From the NCBI GenBank assembly GCA_002269645.1, contig NIVC01000255.1, positions 558,001 through 622,000 on the forward strand: 64,000 nt of DNA, written 5' to 3'. The translations under genes and the position numbers were made by a program. Source of the stretch: Macrostomum lignano. Its lineage: Eukaryota. This document shows positions 7,070-61,126 of this stretch, piece by piece; positions within the stretch are counted from its first letter, which is position 1; each line of letters begins with the position of its first letter. The notes under the pieces are model-generated. The model made no database searches and was not told the DNA's origin. It saw only the letters and a program-made list of their open reading frames with translations.

Positions 7070-8415
7070 CTATTTAGAGCAGATCCTACATCAGAATGAC
7101 CTGCACCAAAATGACCTGAATCGGAAAGATCTGCCCTCTGCTCCGTTAAACTCGGCGCCTCTGCATCTGCAACGGGCTCGGAAACTGGCAGTGGATCAGT
7201 CACGCGCAACGACTCATAGTGCTCATGACGTAAAATGATGCGTACAATTGCAGTGGGTGGCTGCACAGTAGACATACAGTACTGCAATACACTGTCATTT
7301 GCCTGATAAATAACGAGGTCAACATTAAAAAACCGGCTTAAAAGTGGCACAACTTCATCAGGAACGTAGGTGCCTTCAGAAAAACTCATTAATAATAGAA
7401 TCAGCATTTTCCGGTAAAACAAAGCCTTCGTCAATCAATTCTGGCATTACCTGCACTGCACGACACGTCAGCTCATGCCTTAAAGACGCTGCATTGGTTT
7501 CAAGCGGAGTGCCCTGAAACTGGTCACATACTGCATGAAAAAAACAATTCCCATCACCCGGGATCCGAACAACACTTAGCGTATCGAATGGTGGTGTGGC
7601 CAACTCACCACTACCAAGCCTGAAAGATTGAAGTTATACTTTAGACTCTGAAAAGCTTATTATCACATATAAAAACTCCGACAAACACATTCTTACAAAT
7701 ACAGATTCTTAGAAACGTTTCTTGCAATGCAGATTCATAGAAATGTTTTCTTACAAATACAGATTCTTAGATTAGAAAACCTTTCTTACAATTACAAATT
7801 CTTAGAAACGTTTCTTAGAAATGCAGATTTCTTACAATTACAAATTCTTAGAAACGTTTCTTAGAAATGCAGATTTCTTACAATTACAAATTCTTAGAAT
7901 CGTTTCTTAGAAAGGCAGACTCTTAGAAACACAATTCTTAGAAAGGCAGACTCTTAGAAACACAATTCTTAGAAAGGCAGATTCTTAGAAACGTTTCTTG
8001 CAATGCAGACTCATAGAAATGCAGATTCTTAGAAACAGATTCCTATGCAATATCCACAGATACTAAATCTCTAAGATCCATATACTAAAATGCTTCATGA
8101 GTGATAAGTATAGTCTCATGAGTAAAAGCTTCATAAAACTCACCTGGAAACCGAAGCTCCACGGCGACGAATCTGCTCGGCTTCCAGTCGGGCGGCTCGC
8201 TCAGCCTCAGTCTCGGCGTCTCTGCGCTGAGCATCCCGCTGCCGTTGCTCTCCCAGTCGGGCAGCTCGCTCAGCTTCAGTCTCGGCGTCTCTGCGCTGAG
8301 CAACCCGCTGCCGTTCTTCTTCCAGTCGGGCCTCACGATCAGCCTCCTATTCAGCCTGTCGCCGTCGCTTGGCATCGCGACTCTTCTTTTAACTGCTGGC
8401 ACCGCGTCGAACCAT
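7070..8415 (-). pseudogene. Helitron N-terminus: charged ETEAERAARL repeats (exon 8415-8144) plus OTU cysteine protease domain (exon 7619-7070)
   Basis: IPGDGNCFFHAV (catalytic Cys) and HEHYESL (His). Splice phases join exon 1, OTU and the Rep exon in frame. Two nonsense codons in exon 1 (TAA, TAG) and a frameshift in a T-run near 7380. Confidence 0.88.
7700..8035. repeat. AT-rich tandem repeat (TTCTTAGAAA/GCAGA units) inside Helitron intron 1
   Basis: Visible repetition of ttcttagaaa, cagattcttag and caattacaaa blocks. Confidence 0.85.
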
Positions 8416-14938: not shown

Positions 14939-15584
14939 TTTTTCTTTATCTGTTTGCTAATTATCTAGTGTTCATTCCGAGTCAATTCAAAGGTTTTCGT
15001 AAGTTTGATTTCTTGTTTTTGCTCTTGCATATTTCTTACTGTGTGTATAAATTTGCATTTATTTGCTTGTTTTTTATTTTGCTAATTTGCTTATTTGCTT
15101 TGATTTGTATTTCTTACTTGTGTATATACTTGCTCTTATTTGCTTTTTTATTTAAAATTTGCTTCATTGCTTATCATTGCTTATTTGCTTTCATTAATTG
15201 ATGCCATATATGGACGAAATTGCGAACCCATCGCTAATGGCTGAGCTGCCCACAGACGTACTGTCTGTTGAGGCAGCCAGCAGTAACAACGAAGTGATTG
15301 CGCTGCCCACGGATGAATCGTCCGTTGAGGCGTCCGGCGTCTCAAATGACGACGCAGCCCAGCCGAGCAGCAGCAGCCGCACAAGAAGCCGGAGGCAGCG
15401 GCGGCTGATGCTCGAGGCTAGGCTTGTGGCGGAGGCTATAGAGCGAGGGCAAACCCCGCTAATGCCGCACAAAAGTCGCGTCAGAAGGCGTGACTTTGCC
15501 CGCGTCGTGCGCCAGGAGCAGAAAAAGAGGACCAGAGCACCAGAGCTGCAGACGCTGCATTACCAATTGAAGCAGCGGCGGCCA

Positions 15585-15615
<31 letters not shown>

Positions 15616-16154
15616 GGCGGCCACAGCAGCAGCAGCAGCAGCAGCGGCGGCCACAGCAGGAGCAGAAGCAGCAGCAGCAGCAACGGCGGCCACAGCAGCA
15701 GCAGAAGCAGCAGCAGCAGCGGCGGCGGCCAGACTCGCAGCAGCAGCAGCAGCGGTGGCTACAGCAGGCCCAGCAGCTGTGGCAACAGCAGCAGGACGCA
15801 GCAGCTCTATGGTTTCAGCAGCAGCAGCAGAACCTGCAGGACCATCTGCTGTGGCAGCCGCAGCAGCCGCAACAGCAGCAGCAGCAGCAGCCGCAACAGC
15901 AGCAGCAGCAGCAGCCGCAACAGCAGCCGCAACAGCAGCAGCAGCAGCAGCCGCAACAGCAGCAGCAGCAGCAGCAGCAGCCGCAACAGCAGCAGCAGCC
16001 GCAGCAGCACCAGCAACAATACTACCAGGAGCAGTTGCAGCAGCACCTGCAGGACCATCTGCTGTGGCAGCAGCCGCAACAGCAGCAGCAGCAGCAGCCG
16101 CAACAGCAGCAGCAGGCTCCCGGAGCCTACCGGGAGGGGAGACACACGTCTCCC

Positions 16155-16231
16155 GGCGCTAGGGACCAGACCTTCACGTGGTGCGCCCTGAGGGAGTGGC
16201 TACAAAATAGGCACTCTTGAGAACATGTTCC
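16155..16231 (+). ncRNA. Candidate HDV-like ribozyme (imperfect; A at the catalytic-C position)
   Basis: P1 GGCGC/GCGCC, P3 ACC/GGT, L3 TTCACGT, P1.1 TC/GA, P4 GAGTG-CTA..TAG-CACTC, J4/2 GAGAA; P2 only partly paired (GGGAC/GTTCC). Confidence 0.45.
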
Positions 16232-19200: not shown

Positions 19201-21320
19201 AAAGTGGCTGAAAAGAGTCCTGGCGAACCGTCTGAAGCACACGCTGGAAAACCGGAAACTGCTGACGGAGGCCCAAGCCGGATTTAGACAGGGCAGAACA
19301 ACCACGGACCAGGTGCTGAGCTTATGCCAGGAAATCAGCGACGGGTTTAACGATCGGAAACGGACCGTTCTGACCACCCTAGATTTCACCAAGGCGTACG
19401 ACAAGGTGTGGCGAACAGGGTTGCTCTGGAAGCTGCTGAAGAAAGGGATTGACGGCCGGATGATCAGATGGATACAAGCCTGGTTAGTCAATCGCACCAA
19501 CTGGGTGCGGCTAGGCGAGGAGAAAGGCGCAGTGGTGTGTATGAAGCAGGGGCTTCCACAGGGGGCGGTACTGTCCCCCCTGCTGTTCCTGGTATTCATC
19601 GACGACCTGCCCTCGGAATGCGGGACTACCGGCGTCCAATTCCGCATGTTCGCTGACGATGTAGCCCTATGGAGCACCGAAGAACGAGTAGGCAGAGCAT
19701 GTGCTAGAGTCCAGGAGGCACTACGGAAGGTGCACGAGTGGACCAGGGCCTGGTACCTCCCCTTGAACACTAAGAAGTGCGAGTCATGCGTCTATAGCAA
19801 CAACCAAGCGGAGCGAGGAATGCGACTCGACTTGAGAATTGGAGATGACATCATCAGAACGACCTCGGCCCCCGATACCTCGGGTCACGGTGGACCAAAA
19901 GCTCACGTTCTCTGAACACGTGAGGATGCTATCGACGAAGGCCAGGGCGAGGACGCACCTGCTGAAGAAGCTGTGTTGCTTGGAGGGAGGTCTAAACTTG
20001 GAGATTGCGAGGATGGCCTACCTGGCGCTAGTGAGACCGATCCTGGAGTACGCGGCCCCGGCATGGTACCCATGGCTGGCGAAGGTACACCTGGAGAAGC
20101 TGGAGAGGTGCCAGCGGGCAGCCGCCAGAGCCATTGCCGGAGTACTGGCCAGCACGCCGGTGGAAGCGGTGCTGCAAGAAGCCGGGCTACCATCGCTGGA
20201 AAGCAGGCTGCAGTTCCAGACGCTGAAGACCTATGATAGCTACCGACGGCTACCAGCGGACTCGCCTAGGAATGAGATGGCCAATAGGCGCATGAAGAAG
20301 AGGCTGAAGAAGCCCAACTGGAGGCAGAAGTCTCGCGAGGACTGGACCAGACTGGCGTTACCGGAGCCGGAGCCGGAAGAGCGGAGCAGGCAAATCCCAC
20401 CGTGGGTTCAAATCAGAACTAAGGTTGCCTTGGAGGAGCTCACGAACCGGCAGGCAACCGAGAAAGAGAACAAGGAAACCGCAGAGAGCTGGATCGCGAA
20501 CAGAGACACCGACTACATCCTGTACACAGATGGGTCGGTGGGCAAGGAGGGTAAAGGTGGAGCTGGTCTCATCATTTACCGGGGCAGCACGAAGCAGGGC
20601 GAAGCTCGAGGATCAGCGGGACAGGGATGCTCGTCCACGCAAGCCGAGATCAGGGCACTCCGTATGGCAATCGATTGGTTGGACGCGGCAGACTGGAAAA
20701 CGGCCACCATCGTGAGTGACAGTCAAGCAGCGCTCCGGGCTTTCCAGGACAGATGGAAGGGTGAATGGCAGGACGTGAGGCATTGCTGGCTAAAGATCGC
20801 GAAGTGGCCTGAAAGAACCCTGACGATGAAGTGGGTGGCAGGACATGTCGGAGTGGAAGGAAATGAGCTGGCGGACAGGCTGGCGGCAGAGGGACGAGGC
20901 GAGGAAGGTGTCTTCTGGACAAGGAAAGCGGCCACTAACCACATTCGTAGAGCCCAGGAAGGCAGGATGGAGTGGAAGCACGAGAGGGCGAAGGAAATCT
21001 ACGCGAAGAAGCAGCCGGACTGGCGGAAGGAAGGAAAGTGGTGCAGAGCGGCCAGGCGCGATTTTGCCAGGTTCAGGACCGGACACCACGCGGAGCTGGC
21101 GGAGTATGGTGCTCGGATTGGAACCAGGGAGAGTCGAACGTGCCGGCTGTGCAATCTCGAGGAGGAAGGCACGGAGCACGTACTGTTGAAGTGCCCAGTG
21201 ATGGACAACATCAGGAGGAAGACCGGCATCACGGATATGGGCGACTTATGCGCCATGCCCGAAGAATGCCGGGCCCTTTGGAACGAGTTCCGAGAACGGG
21301 TTAGACTGAAGAGAGAGTAG
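16221..21320 (+). CDS. LINE polyprotein: 2A peptide, 5 PHD fingers, APE endonuclease, RT, RNase H, Cys/His finger; frameshifted in homopolymer runs
   Basis: GDVEKNPGP; five C4HC3-type motifs; IIQWNCDGL, IQETKL, GDLNAH, SDH; QGAVLSPLLF, FADD; YTDGS, AEIRAL, SDSQ, WVAGHVGVEGNELAD; CRLC..H..C. Shifts at G-run 17780-84 and at C/G-runs 19869-84. Confidence 0.92.
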
Positions 21321-21404
21321 GGCTGTGGCACGGCAACGCCAACAACAACAACAACAACAGCAGCAGCAGCAGCAGCCGCAACAGCAGCAGCAGCAGCAGC
21401 AGCC

Positions 21405-21446
<42 letters not shown>

Positions 21447-21662
21447 CCAGCATCAGCAGCCGCAACCGCAGCAGCAGCAGCAGCATTACTACAAGGAACA
21501 CCTGCAGCAGCACCTGCAGGCCCAGCTGCTGTGGCAGCAGCTGCAACAGCTGCAGCTGCAGCAGCCGCAACAGCAGCAGCAGCAGCAGCATTACTACAAG
21601 GAAGACCTGCAGCAGCACCTGCAGGCCCAGCTGCTGTGGCAGCAGCTGCAACAGCAGCAGCA

Positions 21663-21769
21663 CCCTCTGGGCTTTACGCCTAGACTGCGGGTTTCCCGCA
21701 GCTCCTACTCGGCGCCGCGTTTTCGTCGCGGAGGGGACCCTCTTCCTTCGGGGGAGGTCGAAGAGCGCC
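21663..21769 (+). ncRNA. Candidate HDV-like self-cleaving ribozyme at the element 5' end
   Basis: P1 CCCTCT/GGAGGG, P2 GGCGCC/G(A)GCGCC, P3 GCG/CGC, L3 TTTTCGT, P1.1 TT/GA, P4 closed by a TTCG loop, J4/2 TCGAA with C at 21759. Confidence 0.65.
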
Positions 21770-22441
21770 GTAAATCGGACACCATGTCCCACGTGCAACT
21801 GTTGCTTTTGTGGTTAGTGTTTTTCTACAGCAGGGCGTACCTTGATTGCGACATCGGAAACGCTGGTAGCGAGGCCCGCCGGCTCTCCACGCTCCTGCTC
21901 AGGGCCGGTTATCGAGCCGAACCCAGGTCCAGGCCCGACTCATATATGTGGGCCGAACTCTTACGAAGCCGAATTAATGGCCATCAAGCTCGCCCTGGAA
22001 GACATTATCAGCTCCGAACCGCGCCATGCCGTCATACTGACCGACAGCCAGAGCGCCATCGCCGCCATCAAAGCTGACCGTCCAACCCTCAACCTGCGGC
22101 TTGAGCAAGTTAAAGATCTCCTCGCTAACGCAGCCATGCACACGAAGATCGCCCTGCAATGGGTTCCGGGACATTCGGGAGTGCCCGGTAACGAACTGGT
22201 CGACGCAGAGGCCAAGTTCGCGGCCACGCTGCCTCAAGACGAGTCCGAAATTTCCCTTGCAGCTGCTAAAGAGCGCATCCGCCATCATCTCAAGTACCGC
22301 CCAACCCTTCAGGGGCACTTAGCCGAGGTCTATGGTAAAAAGATCTCCTTCCATCAGGGACCGCGTCGCCAACAAATCCTCGTGGCGCAGGTCAGAGCAG
22401 GCCACTGCCCTGTCTCCAACTATTACCGCAACCGCACCAAC

Positions 22442-22823
22442 ACGAGGCCGCCCGCAGCCGTATACGCCGTCTCATCAACTACAAGCCTCTCCTGAATGAC
22501 CGGCTGAAGCGGATCTACAGCAAGACCCCCTCGATGCCCGCTCGCCCCCGCGCGCTTCAGGTTTCCATAGCCCAAATGCGTGCCATCACGATCCTTCCAC
22601 GGCGTACTATCAGCACCGAATTGGCTCTAGGGAGGATAGCAGATGCCCCCGGTGCGACCTCTATGAAGACAAGGACCACTTCCTCGAATGTCCGGCCCTG
22701 GCAAGAGTTCGGCACGCGACGGACCTACACCAACTGGAGGACTTGGCCGATGGCGATCTGGTGGCTAGGTTCTTGGACTGCCTGCATAGGCAGCCCTAGA
22801 CCACCTTCCGCAAACAACAACAA
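22442..22823 (+). mobile_element. 5'-truncated Ingi-like element with (CAA)n tail
   Basis: 13-bp TSD CAACCGCACCAAC at 22429-22441 and 22824-22836; encodes a C-terminus homologous to its host (AQMRA..CPRC..H..ECP). Confidence 0.85.
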
Positions 22824-30703: not shown

Positions 30704-32690
30704 ACTAGCCATTTAGCCCCCCGCTGGGGAGCCTTGAAAATGACACTAATTGGTTTTTATTTTGGCGCAAGAGTAACCTTACTATAATCATTCAAAATTT
30801 TGATTTCCAATAATCAAAAATTACCTTTTCTCATTTTGGCAGAAATAAATTGTCATTAATCCGAATTTTATTAGCCAAAAAAGTTTCGTTCATCAGCCCA
30901 AAACCCTTTCTAAATCAGCAAATAGTTCTTATCCTTTCAAGCACAAACTCTTGATGCATATCGTCACTGGCCGGGGCATATTCTGATCCGCAGCAGGAGC
31001 TCAATATGCAAATCCCTGACGCCCTTAGACCCTCTCTCTATATTAGCCTAAATCAAAGAATCAAGCCAGCGCCAAGGATTAAATGCGCTGGTATTTCCTA
31101 TTAGCAGAAATCAGCATCACTTGTGTGTACTTTTTCATTATCTGAATTACATGAGCTACTTGAGCCTGACTATCTGACAATCTGACATACTACCTGACTA
31201 CCTGACTATCTGACAATCGCCCAACAACCTAACACCCCCCCAAAAAAATTCAGCCATTGTCCATGAGCCTTGACATCCCAGCAATTCCCCCAGTAGGCCT
31301 TGACATCTCAGCATTTCCCCAGTAAGCCTTAACATCTTAGCATTTCCCAGTAAGCCTAATCTCAGCAATTCCCCCAGTAAGCTCTGAGATCTCAGCAATT
31401 CCCTCAGTAAGCCTTGACATCTCAGCAATTCCCCCAGTAAGCTCTGAGATCTCAGCAATCCCCCACTAAGCCTTGACATCTCAGCAATTCCCCCAGTAAG
31501 CCTTGACATCTCAGCAATTCCCCCAGTAAGCCTTGACATCTCAGCAATACCCCCAGTAAGCCTTGACGTCTGAGGAATTCCCCCAGTAAGCCTTTAAATC
31601 TCAGCATTCCCCCAGTAAGCCTTGAGATCTCAGAAATTATCCCAGTAAGTTTGGAGATCTCAGAAATTATCCCAGTAAGCCTTGAGATCTCAGCAATTCC
31701 CCCAGTAAGCCTTGAGATCTCAGCAATTCCCCCAGTAAGCCTTGACATCTTAGCAATTCCCCCAGTAAGCCTTGAAATCTCAGTAAGCATAGAAATCTTA
31801 GCAATTCCCGGTAGGACTTGACATTTTAGCAATTCCAGAAAGCCTTGACATCTCAGCAATTCCTAGTAGGACTTGACATCTCAGCAATTCCCCCATTAAG
31901 CCTCGACATTGCAGCAATTCTCCCAGCGCAGTATTTAGCCTTGACATCCCAACAACCCAACTCCCCTCTCCCAAGAATTCAGCAATCCCCTTATAAGCCT
32001 TGATAACTCAGCTATTCCCCCATGAGCTTTGATATCTTAGCAAGTCTTTAATTGATTGTTGACAGCGGTTAATCTATGATTGAACCAAAACTGACCCTAA
32101 GCCCCCAAACCTACACATAAGTGAGTCTTGGCATGTTAGAAATTTCCACTATGAGCCTTGAGCCTCAGCATTAAAGTAACTTCCTCATAAGGTTTGTAAT
32201 CTGAATTTCACCGAAAGCCTTGACCTATCAGCAATTCCCCGTAGAGCCAAAGCATTGAGGTAATTCGCCCCAAGAGCCTTTAATCTTAGCAATTCCTCGA
32301 TGGATCATTGATGGTTGTCACGACGATCGCTCTATAATTTAACCAAAACCATACCCTTAACCTGTAGTCGAATTTCAGCAATTCCCCAATGAGCTTTGGA
32401 AATGTTAGCAATTTACCCATGAGCCTGAAAATTGAGTGACTAACCATTTGATATCTTGGCACTTGCATTTCAACAATTAATTTCAGCAATTTCACAAATG
32501 AACCTTGAATTCAAAGCAATTCTCCCCAGAATGACATAATTATAGCAATTCCCCTTTGTCTTGATATCTTATAAATCCTTCCATGAGTATTGATATATCA
32601 CAGCAATTTGCCATACCAGCATTATGCTCGTAGCAATAGTCCTAGCAGTCTTTAGAGTCTTAGCAATTCCCAATGAGACTTTTACTTTCG
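30704..32690 (+). mobile_element. Non-autonomous Helitron-like element, unit 4 (30-bp array); right boundary approximate
   Basis: ACTAG plus GCCCCCCG-CT-GGGGGAGC start directly after a TCATTTTTTAGTATA end. Confidence 0.6.
31255..31920. repeat. 30-bp minisatellite (CCCCAGTAAGCCTTGACATCTCAGCAATTC)
   Basis: Direct reading; single degenerate copies of the unit also occur in units 2 and 3. Confidence 0.92.
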
Positions 32691-32699
32691 ACAGGGCGC

Positions 32700-35600
32700 T
32701 TTTTTATGATTCCCCCTCATCTGCAGAAACAGGTAGATGCTCAGCTAGATGACATGTTAGCTAAGAATTTAATTAGGCCATGCTATTCGACTTATTCAAC
32801 ACCTTTAGTGATTGTACGGAAGAAAGATGGTACTATTCGAATAGTCAGTGACTTTAGAGTGCTGAATTCACGGGTGAATTATTTTCCGTATCCGCTGCCA
32901 AATATTCAAGAGACATTTTCAAACTTAACAGGCAGTCAGTATTTTAGCAGCCTTGACCTGAATCCTGGTTATTGGCAAGTTCCGATAAAAGAGGAACACA
33001 AGTTTATGACTGCATTTTTAACATTAACAAGAGGCCAATTTGAGTACCAAGTTATGGCTCAGGGCTTATCTAATGCCCCAGGTACTTTTCAAAGGCTTAT
33101 GAATCTAGTATTAGCAGGCATTCAGCATAAATATGCCATGTCATACATAGATGACATAGTGACCTATTCTAAGCAGTTTGAGGATCATTTAGAGCACATT
33201 GGAGAGGTATTTAAAATATTAATTAGTGCAGGACTGAAGCTAAGAGCTAAGAAGTGCAATCTATTTCATAGCAAATTAAAATACTTAGGCCATGTAATTG
33301 GAAGAGAAGGAATTAGGACTGATGAAGCTAAGATAGAAGCCATTAGGAGCTGGCCAAGGCCAAAAGATGTAAAAGAGCTAAGAAGTTTCTTAGGATTATG
33401 CAATTATTATAGTCGCCTTGTTAAGAATTATGCTGAGGCTGCACGTCCGTTATTTTAATTAACTAGGAAAGGAGTGCAGAACTTACAGGCAAAGTGGACT
33501 AGGGCTCATGATGAAGCATTTGAGGAGCTTAAGAGAAAAATGATGTCAACAGAAGTGTTAGCCTATCCAGAGTTTGCAGACGACGAGAATGTTAGAATGG
33601 TCTTAGATACTGATGCTAGTGATGGACGCATAGGGGCCTGCCTAGGCCAAATCCAGTCAGATGGCATCGAGAGGCCTATAGCATATTTCAGTCGTGCTAT
33701 GAAAGAAACAGAGAAGCGCTTTCCAATAACTAGGAAGGAATTATTAGCATTAGTAGACGCGATGAAGCATTTTAGATTTTATCTGATAGGGAAGCGATTT
33801 TTAGCGCGCACAGATCATAAGGCAATCTTATGGTTGTTAGGGCAAACAGAGCCCCAAGGGATTCTAGGACGTTGGGTGGAGCGCTTAAATGAATTTCAAT
33901 TTGATATTGAGCATAGAAGCGGTGCAAAACACTCCAACACGGACAGTTTGTCCAGAAGACCGGCAGAAGTAGCTGAAGCAACCGAGATTTAAAAAGGCGT
34001 GAAAGCCTGTAAGAACGAACTAGAGCAAGGCGTGAGAGCCTGTGAGCAAGGCGTGAAAGCCTATGAGAGTGAAAAGGGCGTGAAGCCGAGAGACAGCGTG
34101 AATGCTGCAGTAGGCGAGAGAGTAGAGAAAGGAGAAGGAGAGATGCAGACTCCGCATCCAGAGGACCCAGAGTCTAGGATCAAGTCATTAGTCATTTCAG
34201 AAGTAGAGGGTGTGAAGGTAGAAGACGTGTCAGCACTGAGTTCAAGCTTAAAGCAACAGAACAGAGACACTGAACCTGATCACAGAGAGAGTGAGATGCC
34301 TAGAGTTACAAAATTGCTAACTGACTACTTGCAAGTACCATTGAAGAAAGAGCAAATTGTTAAAGCTCAGAGGGAAGACACAGCAATCTGCACACTAATA
34401 GAGTGGAAGCAAGAAAATCTGTCAGTCCCGCCAATTCAGAAGAACGAGACAGTCGAAATGAAGCAGTTAGGGCGAAAATATGAGAAAATGAAGCTAGAGA
34501 GGAGTCTGTTGACAATAGAAGAAGAAGGAATCTGGAAAAAAGTCTTGCCTAAGTCTTTAGATAAGCTAGTGTTTAGCGATCTGCATGATAGCCCGCTAGC
34601 AGGACATTTAGGTAGAGACAAAACGGTTCAGCGAGTTAGAGAAAGATTTTGGAGACCAGGCTTAGTAGCCGCAGTCGAAAAGCCTGTGGCTAAGTGCATC
34701 CCATGCTTAGAAAGCAAAAGAGGCCATAAAGTGCAAGCTCCGATTCAGTCACTTCCAATTAGTGAGCCATTTCACCTATTACATATAGATGTGAGGGCCA
34801 ATTTCTAAAATCAGCAAAAGAGGCCATCAATATGTGCTGACAATAGTGGACAGCAATACTCGCTATCCATTTGCATTTCCAATGCGCAATCAAAAGGCTG
34901 ACACAATCATTAAGCTATTGCAAGAAAGAGTATTTAGTGAGTATGGCCAATGCCAATGGATTCACACAGACAATGGCAAAGCATTCACTAGTAAGCAATT
35001 TAGTGCATTCTGTGAGTTGTACAATGTGAAGCATACTTTCAAAACCCCATATCACGCACAGAGCAATGGTTTAGTTGAGAGATGTAACAAACAGGTCAAA
35101 TCAATAGTCACATGCCTGATTGAGAAGGATCATAGCAATTGGGATTTATTAATTCCAGCAGCCTTAGTCGCAGTAAGAACTAGCGTTAATCAGACTACAG
35201 GCTATTCGCCGTATTTCTTATTGTTTGGCAGAGAGGCAGTTTTGCCCATAGACAGCGAACTTAGAGAGCCAAACCAATATGCTAGTTATCCGACCCATGT
35301 AGCTGAGCATGTCGAAAGATTAGAGAGTGCCAGAAAAATAGTTAAAGGAAAGTTTGAGAAAGTACATGACAAGAGACAGATAGACGCTGAGAATCAGAAG
35401 AAACCAAAGGTTATTGAAGTAGGAAGTTTAGTGCTGATTAATAATCCACAAATTAACATTGACGAGTCTAATAAGTTTCATAGGAAAAAGAGAGCCGCTT
35501 TTAGAGTGCTTAAGCAAATCTCAGAAGTAGTTTTTAAGATTCAGAAAGAAGAAGAAGGCGAGTTAGTAGGTAATTAGTATTTAGTACATAGGGATAACAT

Positions 35601-36177
35601 GGCCTCAGTACTAAACTCTGTGAAAGAGCCAATAGATAAGGGAAGCCAGAACGCTGAGACAGTAGAAATTATTAATAAAGAAAGCCAGACGAAAGCTAAG
35701 CATTTAAATAAAATAAATCAGCAGGAGGTAGGACAATCAAGCAAGGGAAGCCACGCCAGAAAGAATAAACTAGAAGAACCGGCTATCGAATTAGAAGAGG
35801 AAAGCTCTGATGAAGAACAGCCGAAGTGGTTTTGCAAGATTCGTGAAAATGAACAATCGGTACATGAGAATGAATCAGAGTTAGAAGCAGAGTCAGAAGC
35901 TGAGATAGAAAATGCTATGCAACTTGAGAGCCTAGTGGAAGAGGAATCGGAGAGGTCAGAGCGAGAGGGAGAAGTAACAATCGATAACAGACATGAAACA
36001 GGGCCGGGGGAAGGCGCGCATGCGGGCCACACCGAGAATGGGGGAACGCCAGACAAAGAGGGTAATAAAACTAAACCATATAATACACGCAGCCGCACTA
36101 GGCCGCCCGTCAGATGCCAGTGTTATCTAAAAAAGTTGGCTACTGTTTGGAGGTTGCTAGAGAAACAAAACTTTTAG
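32700..36177 (+). pseudogene. pol: Gypsy pol (RT, RNase H, integrase), frameshifted
   Basis: YSTPLVIVRKKDG..DFRVLN, YIDD, KYLGH, DTDASD, AYFSR, ELLAL, TDH; H..GHLG, C..C, HIDV, TDNG, NGLVER; C-terminal YNTRSR. Confidence 0.95.
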
Positions 36178-36369
36178 TCAGCCAATGAGAACTCAGCCGC
36201 GGTTTAAATCAAGTGTTTATTGCGCAAGTTAGTTTGTTTGAATTAACTCAGCGGGGGGGAGTCAAAATTTATAAAAGGACACACAGGGCCAGGGGAGGGA
36301 CCAGAATAAAATCCAGAGCTAGATTAATCAGAAAGTAGCTACGGAAATATTAATATTAGAAATGCCCAC

Positions 36370-37156
36370 ATGTTTGAACAAGAGGCAGTGAATGCCCAGA
36401 GATTAGAACAAGAGGCAGTGAATGCCCAGAATGTAGAACAAGAGATAGTAAATACCCAAGGTGCGAAAGAAGAAGTAATGAATGTACAGAGTGCTGAAAG
36501 TGATCGAAAGTACAAGCCAGAGCCGAGTGAGGCCTCAACCAAGCCGAAAGAAGAGTCGAAGAACCTTTCACGGCTCAAATCGGTGATCATAAAGCCAACA
36601 CCAGTACCGCATGAGCCTGGCGCCCGTGCCAGTCTTCTTCGCGCCGCCGCCGCCAAGCCTGTGGTGGTCAGCCAGACTTTAATGAAGCGTCAGCCCGAGG
36701 GCGCAGCGCCAACATGCTACATCACCGCCAAGAAACAGCGCACCATAGCGCCGAAGCCCGATCCGTTTGTTCAGCAGTTACGGTCACCAGCGCAGCAGCC
36801 GCCGCCGCCGGCTCGGCAGCAGGCGGCCTCATGGCAGCAGCCGCCGCCGCCAGCTCGGCAGCAGGCGGCCTCATGGCAGCAGCCGCCGCCGCCAGCTCGG
36901 CAGCAGGCGGCCTCATGGCAGCAGGCGGCCTCATGGCAGCAGCCGCCGCCGCCAGCTCGGCAGCAGGCGGCCTCATGGCAGCAGCCGCCGCCGCCAGCTC
37001 GGCAGCAGGCAGCCATGCGAGGTCATCCGCGTAATGAAGCTGAGTTTCAGCTATGAGCAATGTATTGCGGCTTGGAGAAGGGCCGTTTGGTACGCCCTTC
37101 AGAGCATCAGAGCATCTGGTTGGGCTTACTTACTACAAGACCCAGGTGCGTCATGA
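36370..37156 (+). CDS. Extra ORF between pol and the 3' LTR: EQEAVNAQ repeats plus QQPPPPARQQAASW repeats; possible frameshifted tail to 37156
   Basis: 228-aa ORF (36370-37056) preceded by TATAAAA at about 36270; no signal peptide or transmembrane segment. Confidence 0.5.
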
Positions 37157-38154: not shown

Positions 38155-40632
38155 TTGGCTAGAATTAAACAAAGTTTACTTTTTATGTTTTTGTTGACGT
38201 TTATTTTCCTACTATTTGTTAGACGAGCTACACTTCCACAATTCTACTTCGACGTCAACGCTCGCAATCCGGATGTGAGCGTGAAGCTCTTGAGAAGATT
38301 TGAGAAGGACTCTCACGCCCTCCTCAAAGGCCGTGTTGACCAACACTTTTTGAATGAGTGCCTTGAGCTCCAACTTTCGCCAAAGTTTGTCCGGTTCAAA
38401 TCACCTGGAACACCGGTCTTTCAAGATGCAACCGATCTACATGGAATTCTGGTTAAAAAGCACTTACGCGTGATTAACCGGAAAATGCGAGAGCTGGATT
38501 CCCGAATTAGAAACACCAAGTTGTTTCTCCGGACGAAGCTTGGTTTAGTTACCTTCCTGACTGTTTGTCATCTGGTGAGTAAACAAGCAAACATTTGTGC
38601 TGATAAGGATAAAACAAGGCTGGAACGCAAATTGAAGAATCTCTGGGCTGAAAAACTGGCGTCTTGTCAAGTTCCGCGACCGATCGCGCACAGAGCTCAA
38701 CACCTTGGAACGCGGCCTTCGACACCCGGTGTTACCAGCCAGACTTAATAAACATCACATTACGGCAGAGATTGAGAGCGCGATAGGCAGGTGTTTGTCT
38801 CAGGTTAGTGCTTCAGGCTTTTGCTCACCCAATTTGCCCGAGAACTTTAAGTCTAGAATTAGGTCTGATGTTGATAGGTTCATGTTTCAGGCTCAGGGTA
38901 TCATTGAGAACAAACAAAACAGGCTGTTGCATCAAACCCTTAAAAAGCTGCGTGAGAATGACAAGATCAGGATAGTGGGTTATGATAAAGGATACGGTGT
39001 GGCTATCTTAGACGCTGATGCCTACGTTAACAAATTGAATGCCATTCTTTGTGACAAGACAACATTCCAATGTCTTGGCTATTTTCCTGAAGTCAAGATG
39101 TCGCACCCGGTTCTTAAATCTAAAAGATCTGTTCAAATTTTTCTTAAAAATCACATCAAACCCCATGTTGACGCCGAAGTTTTCAAGAGGATCTTGCCCA
39201 GTGGTAGTCAGCCTGGTCAGATGTATGGATTGTGTAAAGTCCACAAACCGGACAAGCCGTTAAGGCCGATTGTTTCTATGGTTAACACCGCTGAATATGA
39301 GCTCGCTAAATTTCTTGACGATCTCATCCAGCCTCACATTGTCCGTGATCATTCGGTTAGGTCGAATAGAGAATTTGTTGAAGCTATTAGCCAAATCCAA
39401 TTAAGCGGTAAAGAATTGTTGTTTAGCTACTATGTGACTTCCCTGTTCACTAACATCCCGGTTGAATTTGCGATTGACCTGGCCACTGACCTTGTCTACC
39501 AGAATAACCCTCTGACTATTCCTAAGAATGCTTTTAAAAAGATGCTTGGTTTTGCGGTCTCTGGCATTTTCATGTTTGAAAACCAATACTACCGCCAAAT
39601 TGATGGTGTCGCTATGGGGTGTCCTCTTGCCCCTACGCTCGCTGATCTGTGCATGAGCCATTGGGAGACTGAATGGATGAAACTCCCCAATGCCCCACGG
39701 TTTTATAAGCGTTATGTTGACGATACTTTTGCTGTTTTTGACAATAAAAAAGACCACGACGAGTTTCTTACTATTATCAACTCCACCCATCCGAACATTA
39801 AGTTCACCGTTGAGGGCGGAGGTAAGAATCTCCCGTTTCTTGATACCGAGGTTGACTGTTCTGGACACCGTCCTCTTGTGAAAGTTTACCGTAAACCGAC
39901 GTTTACTGGGCTGATGTTAAGTTTTCATGCTTTATGTCCGACTCACTGGAAATCCGGGTTAGTTAGGTGCCTTCTTCACAGAGCCTACGAGGTGAGCAGT
40001 TCTTGGAGTTTATTTCACCAAGAGGTTCGTGCCCTGACTAAAATCCTTAGATCTAACGGTTACCCTCTCAGTTTTGTTAGCCGTATTATCAATGCGTTTG
40101 TCACTAAGAAAGTTTCTATCGATGCGAGACCCAGGCAACCAAAGATAGATTCTTGGGACGCTCTGTTGGTTCTCCCATTTTTGGCAACGCTTCGCTTGAC
40201 TTCAGGAAAAAACTTGAGAAAACGTTTAGCAAATGGCTTAAGTGCACCGTTAGGATTGTGTTTCGCACCGAAAAGATCGGTCGCTATGCTAGCAGGCTCA
40301 AGTCAGCTGTTCCACTTGCTCTAAGGGCTGGTGTTGTTTACCAATTTCGCTGCTCTGAGGATCAGAGCGTTTCCTACATTGGAAAAACAAAGCGACACCT
40401 GCACACTAGAGCTAGGGAACATTGGCTAAAAAGCTCTGCGATTAATGACCATCTGCTTGTTTGTAAAAAATGCTGTGACGGTGAACCGATTCAGCTCTTT
40501 AAAGTGCTGGATGGGTGCAAATTTGACCATAAGCTTAAGATTATCGAAGCTTCGTATATCAGAATGCACAAACCCAACCTGAATGTGCAGCTTGCTGGCA
40601 ATGGGGTGGGGCGTGAGCTAAGAGTACTGTGA
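38155..40632 (+). pseudogene. Penelope RT plus GIY-YIG endonuclease, two frameshifts
   Basis: YGLCKVHK..LRPIVS, GVAMGCPLAP, RYVDD, LPFLD, VYRKPT; VVYQFRC..SYIGKTKRHL..RAREH. Confidence 0.93.
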
Positions 40633-54084: not shown

Positions 54085-54548
54085 CACTCTAGAGAGAAAA
54101 AATCTGTCACTGCCACAGGGCAGTGGCAAGGCAGTGGCAGGGCAGTGGCAACCAATTAGCGGCTGGCATAAGACATTTTAGACAGCATTTAAGGGCATAC
54201 CCAAAATAAAGTATCCACAACAAGTGTCCTCTGCTTAAATTATCAGCTTTCATTCCGAACGAACAGAATGCCCGGAAATCCAACTAGGCGTGCTAGAATA
54301 CTTGTGAGCACACAAGAGAGAAACAATTTGAGAGGTTTGATTCACACAATACCCCAATACTAGCTTCATCACGTCTACAAATGAGAATCAATTCCTTGAG
54401 CATTATCGCGTACACTTCGAAAAAATTGAGAACGACATAGCGATGCTTAGGCTAATTAAAAAAAGCATTGCGAAGAAGTGTTCTATCTTCAACATACCTT
54501 CAACAGGCAATAGGCATCAATAGGCACCTTCAACATACGAGGATGCTC

Positions 54549-54640
54549 AACACCAAGCTGCTCAAGACCAAGCTGCTCAACACCAAGCTGCTCAACACCA
54601 AGCTGCTCAACACCAAGCTGCTCAATACCAAGCTGCTCAA
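54549..54640. repeat. 15-bp repeat x6 (CACCAAGCTGCTCAA), possibly HQAAQ repeats of a dead ORF
   Basis: Direct reading. Confidence 0.9.
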
Positions 54641-55148
54641 AATGAGTGACTAAGGACTATCACTGTGACTGTGACTAAGGAGGACTGTAAGGACTGTGAC
54701 TAAGGATTGTCATTGTGACTGTGACTAAGGATTGTTATGCATCGTCTTATAAGTTTCTTTTAAACTATACCAAGATCTTTCATCAGCGATCTGTTTTGTG
54801 TAACATGTCGCTTTGGACTTGTCTTAAAATTCAGTCTATTAAGTATTCAATGGAATGTATACAAACACTTTACAAGTAAAAATAAAGAAATAAAAAAATC
54901 TCAATAAAATGGCCTTCAATAAACCACTATTTCTTGGTTCTGCATTAGAGATTCAGTCAGCTATGACAAAACTGCCACCCATCTACTCTACTGGAAAATA
55001 TCCTGGAGAATTTCATATTCCAGGGTATTCTTTTGCAGGTTACCTTGTGGCCTGAGTGAGGAAAGTCAATGTCCTTGCTAGTCATCGAGCAGAGCTCGCG
55101 TCCCTTCGGGGCGATCGATAAGCACTTGTTAAATTTTTTAAAGTAAAA

Positions 55149-55572
55149 ATGGAGCAAAAAATTCGAGAAATTCTCTTAAAACCAATTGACGACAAGGTGG
55201 GGTATGACCAAATTCTTTGCGATTTATTTCAAAAAGAGCTAATAATTTCACACAAGATTAAAGTTATTCAAATGAGACTAGGTAGATTATATGAAGTTTT
55301 AGCAGAAAAATATTTTGGATTCGAAAAGGTAAAAAATATTGACCCGGTTCACGTTGAGCGAAAGATTGCATTAGAGCTTAAATCTTCTGATAACACAGAC
55401 AATTCCTCAAGTCGTGAAAGTAACTATCGGAAACTATTAGACTATAAAGTCTTATCCCACCTACCAGTTGTTTTATGTATGCATCAATAAAACTGCAAAC
55501 GAACCTAAGAATATTTTACTAGACAATGGAATCACCCTTGTAACAGGCGAATTTGCATTGAAATTTCTTTAA
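55149..55572 (+). pseudogene. PD-(D/E)xK restriction-endonuclease-like protein, intronless, one frameshift near 55455
   Basis: QMRLGRLYEVL..ID..HVERKIALELKSSDNTDNSSSRESNYRKL (D..ExK..NT.NSSS); continues in the shifted frame as PTYQLFYVCIN..DNGITLVTGEFALKFL*. Confidence 0.65.
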
Positions 55573-55691
55573 TTTCTTTAATTTCTAGAAACTTCCTAGA
55601 CGCAGGCATTAAAAAGTGAAAGCTGTTTCAAGTTGGATTTTAGAGTGGATATTTTGTTATTACACTGAGTGTCGCATCTACAATCTTCCCA

Positions 55692-57301: not shown

Positions 57302-58690
57302 ATGGCGCCGAAAAGACCTGGAAGGAAGGCTAAGCACGTTACCTTCGGGCGTCCATTCGAGTCTAAAAAGAAGCCTGCCATTGCTGCTTCCGATGCCGAA
57401 ACAAACACTCCTACTGTCACTACTGTTACGTCGGAAGTAAAGAATTTCGTAGTTGCTGCTGCTGCTTCTGGTGGTTGTGATAATGTTGTTAAAGAAGATG
57501 CGACTGTAGACTATGAATTGCGCAATGCTGCTGCTGCCCTGCAGGAGTGTGGATTGTGTGACGAAACTTGTGGTGTGTTACTCCTTGCCATTGCCAATTT
57601 TCACAGAGAAATAGGTTTTTATGGAACTTGAATAGGTAGATTCAGATTTCATAAAACATGGATGATAAAGTTTAGAATGCTATTGCAAACTATATGCTTG
57701 AGACATAAGCTAATAACTTCGTATAATCGCCCTAATGTGCTTCAGACTGCCCAATTCCTGTTTTTGTGTCTACTACAGATGAATTAACAAGACAACAAGC
57801 TGAATTGGACGAAGCTGCTGCTGCACTCGGAGAAGCAGGTTTTTGCCACACTGACGGTAAGCCCTGCCTTAGTTTATTGTCTATTATTGGTGGCATAGTT
57901 TTTTAAATCAAGATTTTGAAATTTAAAGAATGCTGATATAGAATCTACAAGTGATACTATAGTGATACTATTTTGTCAATGTAGCATTGTTGTCCTTTAT
58001 TTGGTTTGACTGGCGTTTTAAGGAATATTTTTTCATCAACATTTACGGCGTCATTTTTGAACCAATCTCGTTAGAGGACTTTTTGCTGATTGTGTGGGTT
58101 TTTTGGGAAAATTACAAAAAGTGCACGTCTTTTAACTTCAAAGGTGTCGCGACTCTGGAAGATGACGCAGAGGACAGAGGGAGTCTGGCGACGCTACAAG
58201 TTGGCCGTGCCCCACAATGGGTGCCTTTGTCGGTCTGCTGGTTGAAGCGCATCCCATGTGATGGAAACTGCTTCTTTTCGGCTAGGATCAATTGCAAGGC
58301 ACAGCTTTGGAAATGAACGCAGATAATCTTCGACAAACGCTGGCAGTTGAGCTGGAGAATTGGATCGACAGCGCAGAGAACGACACTGGCATTTCCGAAG
58401 CAGAGTGGTGCGATTTGCTGAAAAGACCAAACGAAAAGGCGAATATATTTCTGACCACGTAACTTCAGCAGCAGCTAGACTGCTTGGCATTGAGATCTGT
58501 GTACCAGGACATGGGCACTGGTTTGAATCTCGAAGGAATTTACTTAGGCCCAGTTGGTGTGGAACCGCGAGCGACAGCTCGATTACATTTCAATCGGCAA
58601 GCTTAGCATTACCAGTCGGTAAATGTGCGCCAATCGTCTCCTCTAGCCGCTGTGGATAATGGTGCAGCCAAGATGATGCCGCCGCCGCCT
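57302..58690 (+). pseudogene. Spliced OTU-domain gene, probably the head of a second Helitron, truncated at Gypsy 3
   Basis: IPCDGNCFFSA..DQLQGTALEMNADNLR parallels IPGDGNCFFHAVCDQFQGTPLETNAASLR of Helitron 1; RLHF..HYQSV His motif; GT-AG introns; frameshifts. Confidence 0.72.
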
Positions 58691-58701
58691 GCCTACTGCC
58701 T

Positions 58702-59676
58702 ACAATGCCACTCATGTGCTTCAACAAAGACTGGAAGACAAAAAACAGAACTTCAATCCGTACCAAAGACAACCACATGAGACATTGTATCACTTGATAT
58801 TACTGGACCACTACCGCCAGCTCGACAACATGCTATCGATTACACTTACATTCTTACCGCATTAGACGTGTTCTCTAAATTTGCTGTTGCCATTCCACTG
58901 CCTGACATTACAGCCACTACAGTTGCAATGGCCTTCTACAATGAAATTATCTGCAAATACGGAACTCCAAAGACACTAACCTCCGACAATGGTACACAAT
59001 TTACGTCGCAACTATTCCAACAGGCTGCTAAACTAAATATCCAACAAATTTTCCCCTCCACCTACAATCCAAAAGCTAACCTAGTAGAACGATTCCATAG
59101 AAATCTACTCGAAATGTTGACACATTTCGTCTATAAGCAACCTGAAGATTGGATCATATACCTGCAGTCAGTGACAATGGCCTACAACAGTGCCGTACAC
59201 CGTTCAACAGAGAACACACCGTTTTTCCTTATGTTCTCTCGAGACTTTCAGCCACCAAGCCTACTAGTTCAAAAACTATTACCTTCTCAGTACGTGGAAA
59301 CGCCAACAACACTACAAAAGTTTACTTCGCAGCCACACCTGGCATGGCTCTACAAGTAGGAGACATCGTTTACCTACATTACCCTGCGCAACATACGCAT
59401 AAACACGCACTTAAATACAAAGGACCATTCCGAGTAACGGCATTGGTATCGGCAACAACGGCACGCCTCGCTAATATCCAGGATCCACATCAAACTCAGT
59501 TCTATGTTCACATTCAACGTCTAAAACGTATCACTAACGACACTACATTCCTCCCAGACCTACAAAATCCAGACCACACAAAAACAACAAATAAACACAT
59601 TGCCACTGCACACGCCGAAACACAAACAACAAACGCACCACCTGCCGGTCATACGTACAACCTAAGATCTCGTTAA
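58702..59676 (+). pseudogene. pol: Gypsy element 3: integrase (C..C, DDE core, C-terminus)
   Basis: QCHSC, SLDITGPLP, LDVFSKF, SDNGTQF, VERFHR, YKGPFRV, VHIQRLK, YNLRSR. Confidence 0.92.
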
Positions 59677-59807
59677 ATTATTCGCTTCATGTCCCCGTGT
59701 AGTGACCGGGATAAAGAATAGCACTACAGCTTCCTCAAGCTTGTCGTAAGAGGCGACTTAATCCTTGTTTTCCTACAAACACTCACACAACTTCGACAAA
59801 CACGACA

Positions 59808-60425
59808 ATGGATTGTCCTATCTGTCTCGGAGAATTTTAATGTAAACTACCTTGTATATGTGTCAATAGACACCAGGTGTGTGGTTCTTGCTTAAGCCTT
59901 GCACATTACAAAAAACCTTTAAAAAATTGCCCTATGTGTCGAGGTAATCTCCGTCAATGCATGATATGCAACTCCTGGCGCACTGAACAATATTGCTTAA
60001 ATCAACATTTTATGTGCACACAATGTATTAAGAAGCTTGCTTATCGCTCCATTTGTCAGTGTCCTATATGCGATGCCACCCCTTTACCTAAAGTTAACAA
60101 CACACTTGCATGCATTCAAGCAGACTATAACCTACAGCTTCACCCATTCACTTATGCTCTTTTTCCATCACATGCTATAATTATCCGCCTCAGATCATGG
60201 CCCATACCACGTGTTGCTCATAAAACACGTAAATACCTCGTTCGCTATTCCTCTTCCTACGGTTCTAGACTCCGGCAATTATCTCCACAAGAAATTGAAC
60301 ATAAGCTGTTTAAAATTGTTAACGATATGAATTTTCACCCATGCCTCATCCTCTGTACAACTCTACCTGCACTCATTCTGCATAATGAGGACTTGTCTTA
60401 TATATTACCACCCCAAGAATCATGA
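59808..60425 (+). pseudogene. Double RING-finger ORF 1 (one premature TAA at 59838)
   Basis: MDCPIC..C..CVNRHQVCGSC..CPMC, then CMIC..CLNQHFMCTQC..CPIC. Confidence 0.8.
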
Positions 60426-60529
60426 CTATAATAGTTCCGCTTTAGAAATTGATTAAAATACCATGCACCCACAGATATTGCAACCATTCTTGCACAGATA
60501 TTACTTATCACATTGACCATTTTTCAGAC

Positions 60530-61126
60530 ATGGATAGCGACGAGTGCATTGTTTGTTATGAAGACGCTGAACAGTATGTCTACTGTCAGCATGGGCATAA
60601 GTTCTGCTATAACTGCTGCACAACGGATAGAATAGACAAATGCCCGCTATGCCGCGCACCACCTACCCTGTGCCAGGTATGCAATACAACACCGCAACAA
60701 CGGATGTGCGCCAACGGGCACTGGGTCTGCCGAGATTGTGCCCTAAAAATTCGGTGCCGCGACTATAAGCATTGCATAACTTGTGCAGCGCCAATATCTA
60801 AGGAAATTTACGCCGGAACAACAGTACCAAAGATCCAACTTACAAAGGAGATCATGGACAGTATGACGGCCAAGGAACTAGCAACAGCTATAACAACCTG
60901 GCCAATACCATTCAACAAAAGAGACCATTTGGAATATCTTTTTGACTTGGTACGTCAATATGCGGCGCATCCAATAAATACTACGAGTACAACTGAAGAG
61001 ATCTACCTGGAATTCCTCAACGCCACCAAATCAACACAATTTACGCCGATACAGCACTTACTGTGGCCACTCGCGAGATTGACAACCAAAGTAAACGATA
61101 TACTGAATAATATGCTTTCCTATTAA
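60530..61126 (+). CDS. Double RING-finger ORF 2 (intact)
   Basis: CIVC..CQHGHKFCYNC..CPLC (C3HC4), then CQVC..CANGHWVCRDC..CITC; TTTTCAG acceptor just upstream of the ATG. Confidence 0.82.
   Translation: MDSDECIVCYEDAEQYVYCQHGHKFCYNCCTTDRIDKCPLCRAPPTLCQVCNTTPQQRMCANGHWVCRDCALKIRCRDYKHCITCAAPISKEIYAGTTVPKIQLTKEIMDSMTAKELATAITTWPIPFNKRDHLEYLFDLVRQYAAHPINTTSTTEEIYLEFLNATKSTQFTPIQHLLWPLARLTTKVNDILNNMLSY

Follow-up and report, generated by a model that had tools for sequence, protein, structure and literature searches.

The stretch of DNA analysed here, referred to as the window, comprises the 64,000 nt between positions 558,001 and 622,000 of contig NIVC01000255.1 from the Macrostomum lignano assembly GCA_002269645.1. 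It is a field of eukaryotic transposons, containing a long interspersed nuclear element (LINE), a Gypsy-type pol, a tnp2-type transposase and an open reading frame (ORF) for an rve integrase core, followed by RING-like ORFs. Among these is an ATG-started ORF at position 55149 of the forward strand, from which homology to a single protein family runs on in a second frame to a stop codon at 55572. Upstream of it are found the first two helices, P1 and P2, of a group I intron, preceded in turn by the start of a gene that fuses a PLA2 domain to an rve integrase; relatives of all three components lie together in polinton-like viruses (PLVs). The ORF is probably the decayed remnant of an intron-borne homing nuclease, drawn from a restriction enzyme family and carried by a PLV group I intron.

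Sequence comparison confirmed that this ORF is real, its homology lying far beyond chance. The two window frames were searched separately, rather than as one frame-corrected protein. The first frame alone matched four proteins in a database of 5.8 billion, with E values from 2.8e-24 to 3.7e-20, and the second frame matched the C-terminal part of the same four with 56% identity (pairwise E value of 2e-12), as expected from the initial annotation of this locus, which had proposed that the homology extends over both the main and the frameshifted frames. Compared with intact relatives, which are 199-233 aa long, the window gene has one frame change, no stops inside the matched parts, and covers only residues 1-135; it is therefore a real gene that carries a single frameshift and from which the final third is missing. 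Its closest relatives, the copies in PLVs, are 54-61% identical, the nearest of all being P0161 (from locus L029), at 61% over 100 aa. An exhaustive HMMER search with a five-sequence profile retrieved 221 cluster representatives at E values of 1e-3 or below, eight of them at 1e-30 or below.

The sole Pfam match of the window ORF was to RE_Eco47II (PF09553; E value 6.2e-4, 19.9 bits, with a curated cut-off of 25.9), a family placed in the PD-(D/E)XK superfamily (PMC3424549) and matched by 64 of 70 aligned relatives at E values of 1e-3 or below (7e-15 at best). The D...E-x-K residues are kept in the window ORF as D65, E76 and K78; in the family columns of the 70 relatives, numbered as in P0001, K89 is invariant, with D76 and E87 nearly so. 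An AlphaFold model of P0001, an intact relative rather than the broken window gene, has an alpha-beta-beta-beta-alpha-beta core (pLDDT 73.7, pTM 0.65) with the catalytic residues on its second and third strands (residues 77-79 and 84-91). When this model was compared with the PDB using Foldseek, the best full-length match was the GGNCC-type enzyme EcoO109I (TM 0.60-0.61, E values 6.5e-4 to 1.2e-2), other top matches being the DdmD nuclease domain, McrC and BamHI. No meaningful match was found in a PDB sequence search with the window ORF, nor any match in an NCBIfam scan of both window frames. The assignment to the Eco47II/Sau96I type of PD-(D/E)xK enzyme, already suggested by the initial annotation, is well supported by sequence for the relatives, and for the window gene by its homology to them. 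One family representative, P0021, is a 542 aa fusion with a C5 DNA methylase domain; a second member of the same alignment (A3) has an additional match to the small chain of ribonucleotide reductase, possibly one more case of an intron- or exon-adjacent context.

The same nuclease gene lies inside a group I intron in seven loci of other assemblies (L001, L002, L024, L026, L027, L028 and L029). In L001 and L002, it is found within an A+T-rich block (around 25% G+C) of genes on the same strand, encoding the rve integrase, a double-jelly-roll capsid protein (PF21738) and, on the basis of weak matches, a Pox_A32-like ATPase and an adenain-like protease (Peptidase_C5, E value 1.7e-3). The capsid protein had no match among PDB sequences, and candidate terminal inverted repeats of the L002 element were not convincing. 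No protein-primed polymerase was seen in the relatives' loci, and these elements were therefore regarded as PLVs rather than Polintons. The copy in L026 is cut by a Gypsy-type retrotransposon, whilst that in L027 lies beside a Tc1-like transposase; from these transposon junctions, both are integrated in eukaryotic genomes. Next to the L027 transposase are two fragments of the nuclease gene on opposite strands within 1.3 kb (1431-1601 on the reverse strand and 2525-2761 on the forward strand), pointing to dead copies, rearranged or nested, in the genome of that host.

The gene split by the intron has a PLA2 domain of the parvovirus VP1 type fused to the N-terminus of the rve integrase. Its first exon ends in a Gly codon, the sequence following the terminal G of the ribozyme starts Pro-Gly-Thr, and the second exon then stays in frame past a His-Asp..Tyr motif and on into the integrase; both the 3' splice site and the in-frame second exon are present in L001, L002, L026, L027, L028 and L029. 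In a further locus, L023, the PLA2-integrase gene is uninterrupted, with a PF08398 PLA2 match of 46.1 bits (cut-off 23.9) and an rve domain, and its start is overlapped over 11 nt by a free-standing nuclease gene, the two occupying positions 393-1698. The intron is hence polymorphic, being present in seven loci and the window and absent from L023.

When the region upstream of the nuclease ORF was aligned, it was found to comprise a conserved short ORF, then conserved non-coding sequence with hairpin potential. Directly after the nuclease ORF in L001, at 7865..8167, is a match to the group I intron model RF00028 scoring 75 bits (cut-off 50; E value 9e-19), and matches of 68.6 bits in L002 and 65.3 bits in L029 lie immediately after the ORF or overlap it; BLASTN found the same ribozyme core in L024, L026, L027 and L028. 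RNAalifold analysis of six cores gave 65 pairs, 14 of which have compensatory changes, including two in the helix taken as P7 by alignment with the Rfam hit. These introns range in length from 799 nt (L001) to 835 nt (L029), and the nuclease ORF, of about 200-230 aa, is positioned between P2 and P3, running into the ribozyme core in the intact copies. The intron anatomy and the exon junction together therefore place the nuclease ORF inside a group I intron that splits the PLA2-integrase gene, and the description of the window gene in the initial annotation as 'intronless' takes no account of its own location within an intron. In L026, L028 and L029, where the ORFs are 199, 207 and 233 aa respectively, the last 60-100 codons are ribozyme core, such that the same bases encode both protein and catalytic RNA. 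The Rfam search in gathering mode on the 132 kb of pooled loci missed the intron in L002, which scored its 68.6 bits when 1.3 kb was searched in E-value mode; as a true intron was missed in this way, negatives from pooled gathering searches are soft.

The PLV sequence surviving in the window, listed in Table 1, consists of the beginning of this arrangement. Alignment of the window to L029 with BLASTN gave 82% identity over exon 1, P1 and P2 (54906-55083) and 65% over the nuclease ORF (55221-55571), whilst nhmmer searches with L001, L002 and L028 found one segment only in the 64 kb, aligned over 54947-55623 at most. The 5' exon is homologous to exon 1 of L001 in tblastn comparison and shares around 82% DNA identity with exon 1 of L029. 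The splice site after position 55040 was placed by alignment to the six loci in which exon 2 restores the PLA2 motif, and the nuclease ORF begins 108 nt past it. The fragment has a G+C content of 36%, lower than that of the G+C-rich LINE at 15-23 kb, in keeping with the earlier remark that the gene is AT-rich relative to its neighbours; its immediate flanks, however, are much the same at 37-41%, hence composition is not a local distinguishing mark.

Table 1. Features of the PLV fragment in the window, an adjacent repeat region, and the PLA2-integrase gene in related loci
Feature	Sequence	Position	Strand	Description
Whole surviving PLV fragment	window	54906..55572	+	start of PLA2-integrase gene, 5' part of group I intron, intron nuclease gene
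5' exon of PLA2-integrase gene	window	54909..55040	+	44 codons from start codon to 5' splice site, unbroken; ends in Gly codon of PLA2 loop motif
P1 helix of group I intron	window	55036..55054	+	last five exon and first three intron bases pair with internal guide sequence; U.G at splice site
P2 hairpin of intron	window	55055..55079	+	independent folds of window, L001 and L024
Two short G+C-rich hairpins	window	55086..55113	+	alignment A4 and fold
Eco47II-family PD-(D/E)xK nuclease gene, broken	window	55149..55572	+	one frameshift, no internal stops in matched parts, one truncation
Two tandem-repeat arrays (neighbour, outside the element)	window	54544..54735	.	15-mer x6.5 and 25-mer x3.6, ~170 bp upstream of left end of fragment
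PLA2-integrase gene	L001	7176-9300		
PLA2-integrase gene	L023	910-1698		
PLA2-integrase gene	L029	564-2662		

The P1 helix of the window was recovered by both minimum free energy and centroid folds, and P1 and P2 appeared in each of the separate folds of the window, L001 and L024. In alignment A7, its U.G pair is invariant in all six distinct sequences and another pair is changed from U-A to C-G in the window and L029, whilst three of the six in-register pairs of P2 are changed on both sides; among the loci, the inner stem of P2 has three or more alternative sequences, all of them base-paired. When P1 and P2 were considered together in an eight-sequence alignment including the window, 98.7% of cells were paired, compared to 20-49% with the partner slid by one to three columns, and four pairs had changed on both sides, giving a covariation score that was reached by none of 500 shuffles. 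It follows that selection acted on the RNA structure of the intron from which the window copy descends. The two short hairpins that follow lie inside a stretch of around 40 nt which is absent from L001-type introns, and in place of which L024 has another insertion; they look like variable peripheral elements, though their structure rests on one sequence, since no covariation is available.

Beyond these parts, the intron in the window has been truncated once, with the loss of its core and 3' end, and everything downstream of the intact 5' exon of the PLA2-integrase gene is missing. No match to the ribozyme core (RF00028) was found between 54500 and 56500, even at an E value of 10, or in the whole window at gathering thresholds; nor did an nhmmer profile of five cores plus exon 2 have any match in the window, and the 3' splice site and exon 2 were absent from it in tblastn, nhmmer and BLASTN comparisons with the relatives. 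The missing C-terminal third of the nuclease is the part that overlaps the ribozyme core in intact relatives. None of the PLV morphogenetic module (capsid, ATPase and protease) is present in the window, the integrase gene being represented by its first 44 codons only, and tblastn searches with all called proteins of L001, L002 and L029 revealed no further gene of the element there. An rve ORF at 58.8-59.4 kb shares 27-37% identity with PLV integrases, with nothing else linking it to the fragment, and no repeats connect the fragment's flanks with other parts of the window. In the absence of the ribozyme core, 3' exon and all other viral genes, the window copy is a dead fossil that can neither splice nor home, left among eukaryotic transposons by an old integration or by the capture of a fragment. 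A perfect 9-mer array (x2.8, at 55562-55586) lies on the right end of the fragment, and the tandem repeats at both ends may be the breakpoints at which the element was trimmed.

More distant homologues of the nuclease, with 29-34% identity, were found in 20 IMG/VR loci (L003-L022), many of them labelled as giant-virus metagenome-assembled genomes. In all 20, as well as in L025, a metagenomic locus, the gene of a C5-cytosine methylase is adjacent to, and convergent with, that of the nuclease; hence, judging from gene content and order, the two form a regular restriction-modification pair in giant viruses. Searches of 17 of these loci with Rfam at gathering thresholds, a fallible and therefore soft negative, and a scan for core motifs revealed no group I cores beside the giant-virus homologues. 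A tblastn search with the L025 methylase found no C5-methylase homologue in the window or in any PLV locus, bearing out the earlier failure to detect a cognate methyltransferase nearby. The resemblance to small homologues in large DNA viruses, also noted originally, does exist, but the closest relatives are the PLV copies, and levels of identity assign the window gene to the clade found in PLV introns, not to the giant-virus or bacterial genes.

The idea that the window contains a free-standing restriction endonuclease gene, horizontally acquired from a giant virus or bacterium and possibly carried as transposon cargo, would accommodate the Eco47II family membership, the homologues in giant-virus contigs and the transposon-rich surroundings, yet it is scarcely credible and largely refuted by synteny, given the PLA2 exon and intron helices P1 and P2 immediately upstream, the far lower identity of the giant-virus homologues than of the PLV intron copies, the lack of a methylase, the absence of any repeat tying the segment to a window transposon, and the broken state of the gene. 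What stands of that proposal, as made in the initial annotation, is the viral origin in outline; the source is the ORF of a PLV intron, not an independent restriction gene or transposon cargo.

The position of the intron indicates a candidate target for the nuclease. In all six loci with both exons, the insertion point falls precisely at the boundary of a GGT (Gly) codon and a CCC or CCA (Pro) codon. Whatever the codons used, Gly followed by Pro always reads GGNCC, which is the recognition sequence of Eco47II, that of EcoO109I being RGGNCCY. Sau96I has also been tied to GGNCC (PMC9465063). L023, in which the nuclease is free-standing and the intron absent, encodes Gly-Val at the intron position and has no GGNCC there. 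Across 30 kb of four element segments (L001 7176-14527, L002 9767-19700, L028 1-8530 and L029 559-4853), GGNCC has no sites at all, alone among the 16 SSNSS patterns; the same sequence has 22 CCNGG and 44 GCNGC sites. Similarly, the called proteins of the PLV elements contain no Gly-Pro dipeptides, compared to around nine expected. In the giant-virus loci, which have the methylase, the frequency of GGNCC is ordinary, with 88 GGNCC and 133 CCNGG sites in 276 kb.

The location of the ORF in a peripheral part of the intron, the insertion into a conserved motif of a needed gene, the difference between loci in having the intron or not and the free-standing nuclease gene in L023 together have the anatomy of an intron-encoded homing endonuclease, as which the enzyme of the PLVs most probably acts. 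Such a nuclease would still recognise a GGNCC-containing site, and would cut intron-less alleles of the PLA2-integrase gene at their Gly-Pro codons; repair from an intron-bearing copy would then spread the intron along with the nuclease. Carriers would be immune, as the intron splits the target site and every other GGNCC appears to have been purged from their genomes.

A number of points weigh against this interpretation. Homing by the nuclease is deduced from anatomy, and its GGNCC specificity is likewise predicted, from family membership and site avoidance. The GGNCC counts are not independent, because three of the four elements are related, with around 81-88% identity over their shared parts, and the avoidance could equally come from the restriction system of a helper giant virus. 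A 5 bp site is also much shorter than typical homing sites. With regard to the protein, the window ORF by itself falls under the curated Pfam threshold, the fold matches of the P0001 model are modest (E values 1e-4 to 1e-3), a PDB sequence search with the profile of 70 relatives gave no meaningful match, and four of the seven intron-borne nuclease ORFs in the relatives are themselves shortened. Finally, no allele of the PLA2-integrase gene lacking both intron and nuclease and retaining an intact target was recovered from IMG/VR; of two scans for such alleles, one had no pattern match and the other gave only a classical Polinton without a PLA2 domain.

Some of these points would fit with another function, in which the nuclease of live elements acts as a restriction weapon, without a methylase, against competitors, the host or a helper giant virus, and the main use of the intron is to split the one GGNCC that cannot be lost. 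The completeness and specificity of GGNCC avoidance, along with the absence of Gly-Pro dipeptides, speaks for such a role, as do the restriction-modification pairs to which the homologous enzyme belongs in giant viruses and a recognition site that is short for a homing enzyme. However, an ORF placed inside the intron is what classically marks homing, and the free-standing arrangement beside the same gene in L023 and the frequent decay of the ORF are signatures of it too. We therefore regard this function as improbable as the principal one, though the two roles are not mutually exclusive.

It is less probable still, and seems quite unlikely, that the window reflects a chimeric assembly or contamination, in which free viral DNA was wrongly joined to host sequence. 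The fragment is short, at around 670 bp, its boundaries of homology are sharp, simple repeats lie near both ends, and its relatives come from metagenome-type assemblies, all of which might be expected of such an artefact. Against this, it is flanked on each side by more than 8 kb of window sequence and embedded among eukaryotic transposons; its decay through frameshift and truncation, and its divergence from every relative (65-82% identity in DNA), fit with an old genomic fossil; and its relatives, too, are integrated copies, with Gypsy and Tc1-like elements beside or interrupting them.

A decayed intron-borne homing nuclease of a PLV is thus the reading retained for the window, and it can be extended, tentatively, to a longer history that we consider rather doubtful as a whole. 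An Eco47II-type enzyme would have been taken from the restriction-modification pair of a giant virus and become the nuclease of a mobile intron, with a target core of the GGNCC type. The purge of GGNCC would have made the methylase dispensable, and the intron, in the one Gly-Pro codon pair of the PLA2 active-site loop that could not be lost, would have served both as vehicle for homing and as immunity device. The window would then record a germline entry into a transposon-rich, probably animal, host.

Comparison with known systems reveals partial likenesses. I-Ssp6803I is the type of the intron-encoded PD-(D/E)xK homing endonucleases and resides in a cyanobacterial tRNA gene; it and the present enzyme both appear to be restriction-fold nucleases encoded in a group I intron, with no partner methylase, in which the intron occupies a conserved coding or functional site. 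The PLV nuclease differs in belonging to another sequence family (Eco47II, PF09553), in having a eukaryotic PLV, not a cyanobacterial tRNA gene, as its host, in the location of its ORF between P2 and P3 and into the ribozyme core, and in the purging of its presumed 5 bp target core from the whole genome. PD-(D/E)-XK is one of six families of homing endonucleases (PMC6083498). With the restriction enzymes Eco47II, Sau96I and EcoO109I, the nuclease shares its sequence family, the D...ExK residues, the best full-length fold match (to EcoO109I) and an insertion site that would form GGNCC; unlike these, the PLV and window copies have no methylase, are shorter (around 200 aa), derive their C-terminus from ribozyme sequence and lie in an intron, and their specificity is predicted. 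The giant-virus restriction-modification pairs (L003-L022 and L025) have a homologous nuclease (29-35% identity) in viral genomes of similar A+T richness, and differ from the PLVs in that the methylase is always convergent, GGNCC is common, and no group I core was found nearby.

Group I introns have been reported in the PLVs of protists in 2025, being 309-376 bp long and lying in a short gene that precedes that of the capsid, with no annotated homing endonuclease (PMC12220804). The introns described here are, like those, detectable with Rfam and located inside PLV genes, but they are 799-835 nt in length, contain a nuclease ORF and split the PLA2-integrase gene. Work on phages, as it is summarised in PMC11296320 (Bonocora & Shub 2009; Zeng et al. 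2009), proposes that a free-standing nuclease beside its target gene is the precursor of mobile introns, and describes 'collaborative homing'. To the extent covered by that summary, the occurrence of the putative homing nuclease of PLVs either free-standing by its target gene (L023) or in an intron within that gene (seven loci) is similar, whilst the setting in a eukaryotic virus-like element and the nuclease family are different. PLA2-like virion proteins are encoded by polintons, adintoviruses and the PLVs associated with insect entomopoxviruses (PMC8502044, PMC11296320). The PLA2 domain found here is likewise of the parvovirus VP1 type (PF08398) and encoded by a polinton-like element; it is at the N-terminus of an rve integrase, whereas the published ones are attached to a pX-like virion protein. 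No paper was found in the literature that describes either a PLV integrase gene split by an intron or a nuclease of the Eco47II family encoded within a group I intron.

It has long been suspected that restriction enzymes and homing endonucleases can interconvert, the two roles usually being held by different families. The Eco47II-like family appears in both, accompanied by a methylase in giant viruses and unaccompanied in the PLV intron, and these kinds of virus may share hosts. The location of the intron between Gly and Pro codons and the total absence of GGNCC from its carriers provide a concrete, checkable prediction of the target. To the group I introns of PLVs, which have been noticed only recently and without a nuclease, a nuclease-bearing type in the integrase gene can now be added. 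The fragment in the window is itself a modest result, a dead viral fossil of 670 bases and not a working host gene, which marks the entry of such elements into this genome.

The content of the rest of the window makes an animal host plausible. No RNA genes were found in the window, two of its ORFs had no identical protein on record, and Pfam searches of ten ORFs neighbouring the fragment gave nothing informative. The LINE-like element, at 15198-22500, is G+C-rich (56-60%) and encodes a PHD finger, Exo_endo_phos_2, RVT_1 and RNase H over several overlapping ORFs; the closest database relatives of its reverse transcriptase are 39-49% identical, and a crustacean protein matches at 28%. At 32673-37056, the Gypsy-type pol (RVT_1, Integrase_H2C2 and rve) is broken into at least six consecutive ORFs, and a second RVT_1 ORF is found just downstream, at 38705-40324. 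A 407 aa ORF at 44022-45245 matches Transposase_21 (tnp2) and DUF1258, which suggests a DNA transposase of the CACTA or KDZ type. Beyond the PLV fragment, the region 57987-61126 has no reverse transcriptase upstream and contains the rve integrase-core ORF (58868-59359), preceded by an ORF that has no Pfam match and a 'DGNCFF'-like motif reminiscent of OTU proteases. The rve ORF is followed by two Cys-rich ORFs, the first of which has no Pfam match, whilst the second (60449-61126) has RING-finger domains identified by Pfam.

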